A stretch of 39,996 nucleotides of DNA from Octopus bimaculoides (lineage: Eukaryota), in NCBI RefSeq assembly GCF_001194135.2, contig NC_069005.1:7905589-7945584 (forward strand), written 5' to 3'. Position 1 is the stretch's first letter. Every line of letters starts with the position of its first letter. Made by a program: the position numbers and the translations under genes. Below, one piece after another: positions 29,276-30,247 of this stretch. The notes under the pieces were generated by a model, which worked only from the letters and a program-made list of their open reading frames with translations, made no database searches and was not told the DNA's origin.

Positions 29276-29487
29276 CTGATATATACGGAAATGAAGACGA
29301 AGATGATGAGGATGAAGATGACCCAGATTGGGTAAACGAGGAAAAGGAGCAGTTCCACAATTTCCGTGATAAAAACAAAGATGGCTTCTTGGACAAAGCC
29401 GAGGTGACAGAATGGTTAATTCCTGAGGAGTTTAATCACCTTGATACTGAAGTAAATCACCTTGTGAGAACGTCTGATGTGGATCAG
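29276..29487 (+). CDS. CALU: Calumenin-like alternative exon 7a (divergent, acidic): (T)DIYGNEDEDDEDEDDPDWVNEEKEQFHNFRDKNKDGFLDKAEVTEWLIPEEFNHLDTEVNHLVRTSDVDQ
   Basis: Acceptor ttcatag ending 29275, donor cag|gtgtgt at 29488; 212 nt, phase 1-0, no stops; canonical EF5 loop DKNKDGFLDKAE; collinear with exon 7b. Not in the ORF track. Confidence 0.85.
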
Positions 29488-29518
29488 GTGTGTAATAGAG
29501 CATTGCCGGTGCAATGCA

Positions 29519-29997
29519 TCAGAAACTGCTCAACAAACTTATAGAATTTTAACACTTCGAGCCTATTTCATGTAGAAAGTAAAGCAGTAAAGCAGAAAGC
29601 TTCTGACGGTTCGTCTCTTATGACTTGTTCCAGTTCCAAAAAGACAGATCTGGAATCAATCATTTCATACCTTTCCTCTTGTGGCACTTATCTACCAGAC
29701 ACTTTACTGCTGACTTTTTTGGTAAAATAGACAGAACCTCAAGAATATAACATGTGGCCATTGAAAGGATTGTGCAGAGAGAACAAATTATTTTTCCATT
29801 TATGTCAACATAGCTTCTTATACAAGGTTGCTAAATTTACTATTGTCTTCTCAATCTATTTGTAAAATTAACTGAATTTTGTATAAAAATTTGAAAATTT
29901 TCTTCTGAAATATATATATATATATTTATATATATATTTAAAAAAAAAAAAATTGAAGTATTGTGTATTCAATGAGTTTGTTGAGCAGATATTTTGA
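29519..29997 (+). promoter_or_regulatory. Intronic long-range RNA duplex between exons 7a and 7b (29519-29547 pairing with 29967-29997)
   Basis: CTGCTCAACAAACT (29526-29539) is the exact reverse complement of AGTTTGTTGAGCAG (29975-29988); extendable on both sides with G-U pairs and small loops. Confidence 0.75.
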
Positions 29998-30044
29998 CTT
30001 GATTTTTTTGACGTATGTTTTGATGACGGCTTTGCCATTTGTAG

Positions 30045-30247
30045 GTGACATGTGGCCCGGGGATAAGGAGGGAGAGCCAGAACCCGATTGGGTTAAAGGT
30101 GAGCGCGAGCAGTTCTCCAACTATAGAGACAAAAATGGTGATCATATGATGGACAAAGAGGAAGTGAAGGAATGGCTACTTCCCTCTGATTACGATCATT
30201 CAATCGCCGAAGCAAGCCATTTAATTTATGAGTCAGATAAGAACAAG
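30045..30247 (+). CDS. CALU: Calumenin-like alternative exon 7b (canonical): (S)[67 protein letters not shown]
   Basis: Acceptor atttgtag ending 30044, donor aag|gtttgt at 30248; 203 nt, phase 1-0; close to the calumenin consensus EREQF..RDKN.D..MDKEE..WILPSDYDH..AEA.HL.YESD. Confidence 0.95.

Follow-up and report, generated by a model that had tools for sequence, protein, structure and literature searches.

The window analysed here is a stretch of 39,996 nucleotides (nt) from Octopus bimaculoides (NCBI RefSeq assembly GCF_001194135.2, contig NC_069005.1, positions 7,905,589 to 7,945,584 of the forward strand). Positions are those of the window unless another locus is named. Its plus strand carries the calumenin gene of this species, and the exons assembled from it match UniProt A0A0L8FHN1_OCTBM at every residue. 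Two neighbouring exons of this gene, 7a and 7b, are very probably tandem-duplicated homologous exons, of which each productive mRNA would keep exactly one. Calumenin is a CREC-family protein of the endoplasmic reticulum (ER) and secretory pathway with six EF-hands. In a protein search, the top named matches were calumenin or reticulocalbin-3 from Octopus, other molluscs, arthropods and vertebrates (E down to 1e-204), and calumenin and reticulocalbin as closest named relatives place the protein in the CREC family. When the window was searched by tblastn with a human CALU sequence, which served only to locate exons, two copies of exon 7 and one copy of each other exon were found, all collinear. 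This collinearity, the Pfam matches in the C-terminal part and the helix-loop-helix units seen throughout an AlphaFold2 model account for six EF-hands. The first coding exon starts with MKYYTFFVTIFLFATTLCS and contains a hydrophobic 10-mer (mean 2.41 on the Kyte-Doolittle scale), signal-peptide-like as judged by eye only. The last exon ends in ALKSHDEF before the stop, an HDEL-like ER retention signal. The gene and the elements discussed below are laid out as follows.

14641..14754, plus strand: coding exon 1, starting at 14641 (deposited proteins) or 14662, with the signal-peptide-like stretch and donor AAG/gtaagt; found by scanning open reading frames (ORFs) and donors, and identical to the N-terminus of A0A0L8FHN1 and A0A0L8FIB5.
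18821..18951, plus strand: coding exon 2 (KLSDIDHE...SKEKLG), from tblastn with human CALU.
20149..20345, plus strand: coding exon 3, EF-hands 1-2, the counterpart of the exon duplicated in vertebrates and single here, from tblastn with human CALU.
22878..23044, plus strand: coding exon 4, EF-hand 3 and the start of EF-hand 4, from tblastn with human CALU.
25525..25585, plus strand: coding exon 5 (exon 6 of a first-pass annotation of the window, which began it at 25524 instead of 25525), EF-hand 4 loop, ending in phase 1, with the donor common to 7a and 7b; from splice reconstruction.
29276..29487, plus strand: exon 7a, 212 nt, with the acidic run NEDEDDEDEDD, the EF-hand 5 loop DKNKDGFLDKAE, and the entering helix and loop start DVDQ of EF-hand 6; present in XP_052832783.1 and A0A0L8FIB5.
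29526..29540, plus strand: intronic element A, CTGCTCAACAAACTT, 38 nt past the 7a donor, an invariant core in five cephalopod loci.
29974..29988, plus strand: intronic element B, GAGTTTGTTGAGCAG, 56 nt ahead of the 7b acceptor, the reverse complement of A (15 bp, one G.U).
30045..30247, plus strand: exon 7b, 203 nt, canonical type (GDMW...), EF-hand 5 and the EF-hand 6 start DKNK; present in UniProt A0A0L8FHN1.
32931..33035, plus strand: last coding exon, with the remainder of the EF-hand 6 loop (DGKLSKNE), the C-terminal helix, HDEF and the stop, and with the acceptor common to 7a and 7b.

Exons 7a and 7b are separated by a 557-nt intron. The acceptor and donor are ttcatag/CT and CAG/gtgtgtaa for 7a, tttgtag/GT and AAG/gtttgtaa for 7b; the flanks they share are the upstream donor ACATAA/gtaagt at 25585 and the last-exon acceptor cag/GATGGT at 32931. 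Both exons have a length of 2 mod 3, are free of in-frame stops, and are entered in phase 1 and left in phase 0, the leftover base of the upstream exon being completed to Thr by 7a and to Ser by 7b. From the PDW motif on, the two peptides share 28 of 55 residues, and BLASTP found 31 of 59 positions identical with E = 2e-22, a likeness therefore far beyond chance. Adjacency, similar length, significant similarity, matching phase and AG/GT sites compatible with the same flanks are together what defines a tandem exon duplication. Aligned to human CALU residues 213-281, the swapped cassette spans the linker after EF-hand 4, the whole of EF-hand 5, and the entering helix with the four first loop residues of EF-hand 6. 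Identity to human CALU is 63% for 7b and 44% for 7a.

The coding sequences that include a single copy are open, with 321 codons for 7a and 318 for 7b when the Met at 14662 is taken as the start. As each exon is 2 mod 3, joint inclusion and joint skipping each break the frame. With 7a and 7b together, a frameshift leads to a stop within 7b, 98 nt upstream of the last exon junction, and such mRNAs would be expected to be removed by nonsense-mediated decay. With both skipped, the protein terminates in EEYIRW, the stop following after two codons. This rule, by which both or neither copy breaks the frame, held in each species examined. The first-pass annotation had described two stop-free GT-AG exons of 212 and 203 nt in phase 1-0, with 28 matches in 55 residues from PDW, which swap EF-hand 5 and the start of EF-hand 6 and of which either one, never both, links the flanks in frame. 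Its coordinates, lengths, phases and splice sites for the pair were all correct, the residue count and the extent of the swap were reproduced, and the reconstructed coding sequences were open singly and broken jointly.

The two copies were compared in ten species pairs, including the annelid Ridgeia. Net charge ranges from -18 to -27 in 7a and from -9 to -14 in 7b. An additional acidic run is found in 7a in all ten pairs, and the copy that carries it is always the upstream one. Position 8 of the EF-hand 5 loop is Leu in 7a (10/10) and Met in 7b (9/10). By sequence, 7b is of the canonical bilaterian type. The EF-hand 5 loop of 7a, DKNKDGFLDKAE, is canonical as well. In octopods, position 6 of the corresponding 7b loop (30125-30160) is His in Octopus and Lys in Argonauta (DKNGDKVMDKDE) instead of the usual Gly, which is retained in 7b of the cephalopod-like contig L001 and of other molluscs. 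The earlier statement that both copies keep intact calcium loops therefore needs a qualification: the loop sequences are as it quoted them, but the 7b EF-hand 5 loop has His, not Gly, at position 6. With the Pfam EF-hand pair model, the 7a form scored higher (51 bits) than the 7b form (39 bits).

An AlphaFold2 model of the O. vulgaris 7a form has a mean predicted local distance difference test score (pLDDT) of 78. Residues 273-337 form a normal EF pair with a short loop-loop bridge and pLDDT blocks of 80-96, and the acidic run at 261-271, with a pLDDT of 66, has the lowest confidence of the C-terminal half. Three regions distinguish the isoforms: a flexible poly-Asp/Glu insert ahead of EF-hand 5; the loop of EF-hand 5 with its exiting helix; and the EF5-EF6 linker with the entering helix of EF-hand 6, which reads IPEEFNHLDTEVNHLVRTSD in 7a and differs from that of 7b. 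From these differences we infer that the two isoforms may differ in their capacity for low-affinity calcium binding, in the affinity of their loops, or in the surface by which the C-terminal lobe binds partners.

Both forms are already present in the databases, where the RefSeq and UniProt entries are predicted gene models. For this gene, UniProt holds A0A0L8FIB5 (7a form, 328 residues) and A0A0L8FHN1 (7b form, 325 residues). The 7a form is RefSeq XP_052832783.1 and XP_014789761.1, named "calumenin [Octopus bimaculoides]"; in octopus RefSeq, 7a is the annotated form and the 7b form is missing. RefSeq calumenin of O. sinensis (XP_036369108.1) and isoform X1 of Argonauta hians contain 7a, and the O. 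vulgaris isoforms X1 and X3 contain 7a and 7b, respectively. Among our sequence records, P0391, P0390 and P0392 carry 7a and P0122 carries 7b. The junctions of the deposited octopus proteins are exactly those predicted in the first-pass annotation. On the strength of these entries, 7a is neither a rare nor a doubtful exon. Among the sequences retrieved for Physella acuta (X1/X2), Pecten maximus (X1/X2) and Saccostrea cucullata (X1/X2), one annotated isoform is of the acidic 7a type and the other of the canonical 7b type, so that one-or-other transcripts of both kinds are represented, as predicted protein models, in O. bimaculoides, O. vulgaris, Physella, Pecten and Saccostrea. Proteins of the 7a type are also found in Aplysia, Biomphalaria, Elysia, Lymnaea, Patella, Batillaria, Crepidula, Mytilus coruscus, Sinanodonta, Ruditapes and Mercenaria. 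Full-length 7a-only ORFs lie on 1.2-2.2 kb contigs from gastropods and a mussel-like bivalve (P0132, P0140, P0202), with 7a directly followed by last-exon sequence; given the length of these contigs, such ORFs can come solely from spliced mRNA.

An exhaustive profile search with the 7a exons matched 1289 proteins at E <= 0.001; among the matches inspected, those that begin at the profile start, in the acidic N-terminal part, are mostly single-exon genomic ORFs. A protein search with a 125-residue query gave short proteins only and missed the 99%-identical O. vulgaris isoform, so that absence from these searches does not mean real absence. No paper on a C-terminal exon pair of invertebrate calumenin was found in a literature search from which most subscription journals were excluded. 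The first-pass annotation had supposed that the pair might be undescribed; this stands as far as the papers searched are concerned, but UniProt and RefSeq have listed the isoforms for years. The pair was already visible in annotation and, as far as can be told, had gone uninterpreted.

Some further observations concern the assembly and the models of this gene. Relative to the UniProt entries, which begin MLSSQEIMKYY, the RefSeq O. bimaculoides models P0390 and P0392 have 73-90 extra residues ahead of the signal-peptide-like Met, probably an upstream ORF drawn into the model. The window contains five runs of N (1546 bases in all; 6759-7187, 8227-8638, 11330-11852, 23639-23720 and 38567-38666), which are draft-assembly gaps, and one of them falls in the intron between calumenin coding exons 4 and 5. 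The intron that follows 7b contains a tandem repeat at 30971-31323, with 2-3 copies of units of 61-62 and 114 nt, which gives rise to a spurious ORF of 183 codons at 30854-31405.

The order upstream exon, 7a, 7b, last exon was found at the genomic level in O. sinensis, Argonauta hians and L001, and likewise in Pecten maximus, Crassostrea angulata, Aplysia californica and the siboglinid annelid Ridgeia piscesae. A further cephalopod-like fragment, L002, contains 7a only. The 7a and 7b exons of all fetched loci are 2 mod 3 in length. In the cephalopod loci (O. sinensis, Argonauta, L001, L002), the lengths of 212 and 203 nt and the donor and acceptor motifs are those of the window. This genome-level sampling was made without the loci of Physella, Lineus and Saccoglossus, nemerteans and hemichordates thus being outside it. 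The pair is accordingly present in cephalopods, gastropods, bivalves and one annelid.

The ratio of nonsynonymous to synonymous substitution rates (dN/dS), calculated pairwise by the Nei-Gojobori method over five cephalopod loci, is 0.05-0.41 for 7a and 0.03-0.20 for 7b. These figures are based on only about 36 synonymous sites and are noisy, yet all of them are well below 1. Judged by these ratios, both copies are under purifying selection. The earlier proposal of selection rather than decay is borne out for 7a, whose dN/dS is not near 1 and which is intact, with identical length, phase and splice sites, in the five cephalopod loci.

A neighbour-joining tree of the 55-residue core of the exons was built with 200 bootstraps. 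Cephalopod 7a and 7b were sisters in none of the 200 replicates, and in 99.5% of them the non-cephalopod exon closest to octopus 7b was of the 7b type; the duplication is therefore older than the cephalopods. With order and phase unchanged across cephalopods, gastropods, bivalves and one annelid, the pair is, by its distribution, old and not a peculiarity of the octopus or of cephalopods.

Whether it goes back to a single event is a separate matter, and three observations weigh against this. In the same tree, a single clade of all 7a-type exons obtained a bootstrap of only 0.5-8%. The brachiopod Lingula anatina has no pair; a single exon 7 lies about 230 nt after the upstream exon, so that either a loss or separate mollusc and annelid duplications are needed. 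Finally, Ridgeia 7a is without the PDWV motif. A search seeded with the Ridgeia 7a form gave no further named annelid 7a isoform. Since this exon family is evidently prone to duplication, the mollusc and annelid 7a could have arisen independently from the same exon, which we consider rather unlikely. The 7a clade was not recovered because the sequence is too short and 7a evolves faster, and a single origin rests instead on exon order, phase, and the charge and Leu signatures. In all ten species pairs, Ridgeia included, the acidic copy is upstream, the phases are the same, and the Leu/Met difference and the roughly two-fold charge gap are found. In Lingula, the RefSeq calumenin (P0123, 480 residues) has its N-terminal half repeated twice, and at its locus (L010) a matching exon occurs at 3216-3305 and at 8949-9038 with an unrelated opposite-strand gene between; this repeat is either a local duplication or an assembly artefact.

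In cephalopods, the 7a-7b intron has a length of 557-2988 nt. Element A (38-52 nt past the 7a donor) and element B (55-212 nt before the 7b acceptor) are both present in O. bimaculoides, O. sinensis, Argonauta and L001, separated by 430-2700 nt that cannot be aligned. Apart from a microsatellite, they are the sole blocks of the intron alignable between Octopus and Argonauta. The duplex they would form comprises 15 bp in the window, has a predicted energy of -23 to -27 kcal/mol across species, and has 93% of cells paired. The perfect 14-nt match between A and B in the window was equalled in 0 of 1000 shuffles. In the minimum-free-energy fold of the intron (z = -3.7), the A/B pairing is the closing helix. 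The core shows one substitution only, a C-to-U change that keeps the pairing as G.U. Beyond the core, the helix extensions differ in sequence in L001 and Argonauta and still pair. This conserved intronic complementary pair is apparently a new item.

No compensatory double changes were found in the helix core, which tells against a functional helix, and the pairing is therefore inferred from conserved complementarity. A and B might instead be the relic of transposon terminal repeats, or a protein-binding motif present twice, with no functional RNA helix. Besides the lack of covariation over the 15-bp core, the microsatellite and repeat sequence in the loop and the failure to find the elements in Aplysia, Pecten, Crassostrea and Ridgeia would fit such an origin. 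In Pecten, Crassostrea, Aplysia and Ridgeia, only scattered 11-mers without a partner (0-2 mismatches) were detected, and the best end-to-end intron duplexes of Aplysia and Ridgeia were no better than shuffles (z -1.0 and -0.6). However, a relic or a repeated motif does not readily explain why both arms stand at matching positions in four cephalopod loci while the stretch between them cannot be aligned, nor why the single core substitution and the altered extensions of L001 and Argonauta still pair. We therefore regard this alternative as unlikely.

A third, competing element was also sought, as in a docking and selector arrangement. No further copy of A or B with at most 3 mismatches lies between 25586 and 32930, and across the window 9 such copies were counted, below the chance mean of 13.6. 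Two other features of this intron were observed. An (AT)n microsatellite with a poly-A run lies at 29895-29955, inside the part that A and B would loop out, and similar microsatellites are scattered in the Argonauta and L001 loci. A hairpin, GCATTG-ccggtg-CAATGC, is located at 29500-29517, 13 nt past the 7a donor; O. bimaculoides, O. sinensis and L002 all have it, but it has no clear counterpart in Argonauta and L001.

The last AG ahead of the 7b acceptor is the terminal AG of B in both Octopus and Argonauta. The AG-free stretch before 7b measures 54 nt in Octopus (window 29989-30044), 210 nt in Argonauta (12742-12953 of its locus, L005) and 14 nt in L001. For a sequence of this pyrimidine-rich composition, the Argonauta zone is only mildly unusual, since 4% of shuffles had no AG; it is the third-longest such gap of its locus. 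AG-free zones that start at B would fit distant branch points placed just past B, and hint at them.

The way in which exclusivity may be enforced appears to differ between lineages. In bivalves, the 7a-7b intron has 54 nt in Crassostrea angulata (L007 3507-3560) and 75 nt in Pecten maximus (L006 5916-5990). A short intervening intron, which constrains the space between donor and branch point, is a classical mechanism of mutual exclusion (PMC6071210), and introns of 54-75 nt are likely short enough for such a block of 7a-to-7b splicing. C. angulata X3 (P0126), the one RefSeq model with both exons in frame, uses a donor 16 nt inside 7a and thereby lengthens the intron to 70 nt, which is consistent with a spatial constraint on the 54-nt intron. 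The 557-nt intron of Octopus is not short in linear sequence, and linear distance therefore does not forbid 7a-7b splicing there.

In cephalopods, the A/B duplex would loop out the long intron and help govern exon choice. The helix might hold the 7a donor near the branch-point region of 7b and so bar splicing between these two sites. With branch points just after B, the helix would put them about 40-70 nt from the 7a donor, equivalent to a short intron made by structure, and bivalves would reach the same exclusion through their intron of 54-75 nt. We tentatively suggest that the coleoid intron expanded from a short ancestral one and that the A/B helix loops the expansion out, recreating a steric block on 7a-7b splicing; as an explanation this is possible rather than probable. 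Two points speak against it: with the loop taken out, the 7a donor and the 7b acceptor are still about 93-108 nt apart, and 264 nt in Argonauta, and steric exclusion by A and B requires branch points just after B, which are putative. Alternatively, the helix would modulate the ratio of 7a to 7b in some other way.

Exclusivity itself could be less than strict, with a third in-frame product that contains both cassettes through an alternative 7a donor and would be longer by one EF-hand unit. In-frame models with both cassettes are known for Crassostrea angulata (X3), Ridgeia, Solemya, Elysia marginata and the metaclust protein P0001, and because X3 carries both exons, some double inclusion may be real, which counts against strict exclusion. 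In the window, the 7a donor CAG/gtgtGTaa contains a second GT, 4 bases downstream, that would link 7a to 7b in frame. The fused models (P0125, P0126, P0127, P0137 and P0001) have about 390-450 residues, and the bridges of those from Ridgeia, Solemya and E. marginata and of P0001 are 2-6 residues long and start with VC or VG. The models from Ridgeia, Solemya and E. marginata have generic or "hypothetical protein" names, and the extra VC or VG between their cassettes corresponds to the first intron bases; we take these fusions to be artefacts of ab initio prediction. No both-cassette model was found in cephalopods in the clusters inspected, and a product with both cassettes would interrupt the EF-hand 6 loop begun in 7a. 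The fused models as a group are thus probably annotation artefacts, X3 possibly excepted, and such a double-inclusion product appears improbable.

That 7a is a decaying or non-functional duplicate, with all protein made from 7b, is scarcely credible: the lower identity of 7a to human CALU (44% as compared with 63% for 7b) and its long branches in the tree would agree with decay, but RefSeq calumenin of both O. bimaculoides and O. sinensis uses 7a, five cephalopod loci have the exon intact, unchanged in length and splice sites, at a dN/dS of 0.05-0.41, 7a-only cDNA-like contigs occur in gastropods and a mussel-like bivalve, and the exon encodes canonical EF loops with a predicted EF-pair fold.

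Together, these observations lead back to our preferred reading of 7a and 7b as homologous exons used one at a time. Calcium-dependent folding, sorting and secretion are tuned by calumenin, of which molluscs and at least one annelid would make two versions with a consistent, roughly two-fold difference in acidic charge, a natural experiment on EF-hands 5-6. For annotation, the pair accounts for a recurring error, seen in the fused models of about 390-450 residues and in the lack of the 7b form from octopus RefSeq. Lineages appear to police the choice differently: bivalves by a very short intron, cephalopods by a long one that contains a conserved RNA bridge. If the steric reading is right, RNA structure in the form of the A/B helix would stand in for a short intron and would have been kept in all four cephalopod loci sampled. 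None of this is a first-order surprise, since features of this kind are familiar and both isoforms were in the databases before. The mollusc isoforms in RefSeq and UniProt are the same 7a and 7b forms with identical flanks, but they are database records, and no paper was found in which they are recognised as a conserved mutually exclusive pair, the duplication is dated or a mechanism is discussed.

Several known systems of mutually exclusive exons offer a comparison. Exclusion by a short intron fits the 54 and 75 nt of bivalves but not the 557 nt of Octopus in linear sequence. In OGDH, mutual exclusion of exons 4a and 4b is enforced by distant branch points that lie close to the donor of the intron between them (PMC7969005). 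Distant branch points of this type would be compatible with the octopod AG-free stretch that begins at B, whereas the L001 stretch has only 14 nt. The exon clusters of Dscam, 14-3-3zeta and Mhc depend on competing RNA structures between a docking site and selectors (PMC6071210), and exons 7a and 7b of ATE1 are accompanied by conserved complementary intronic elements (PMC7797038). The octopus locus resembles these systems in having conserved complementary intronic elements beside mutually exclusive exons. Docking systems have at least two selectors per docking site, whereas the octopus has one pair with both arms in the 7a-7b intron, and since no third copy of A or B lies between 25586 and 32930, it is not a docking and selector system. 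For Dscam exon 17, a combination of steric hindrance and RNA structure has reportedly been described.

The closest parallel is within the family. Vertebrate CALU has mutually exclusive exons for EF-hand 1, which arose in jawed vertebrates and in human give calumenin-1 and calumenin-2 (chr7:128754261-128754455 and 128754528-128754722; PMC4494069). Both cases share the gene family, a tandem-duplicated exon and an either-or swap of an EF-hand cassette. The vertebrate pair, however, covers EF-hand 1 (human residues ~75-138) and belongs to jawed vertebrates, whereas the octopus pair, which occurs in molluscs and an annelid, covers EF-hand 5 together with the beginning of EF-hand 6. The vertebrate EF-hand 1 pair has no equivalent in the window, where the exon at 20149-20345 is single. 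The first-pass annotation had named the vertebrate pair near the first EF-hand and proposed that the octopus pair is independent of it, and we agree: with the vertebrate-duplicated exon in single copy and the pair elsewhere, two independent duplications in one family are indicated. The octopus pair would be a second, independent exon duplication in the calumenin family that was resolved into mutually exclusive use.

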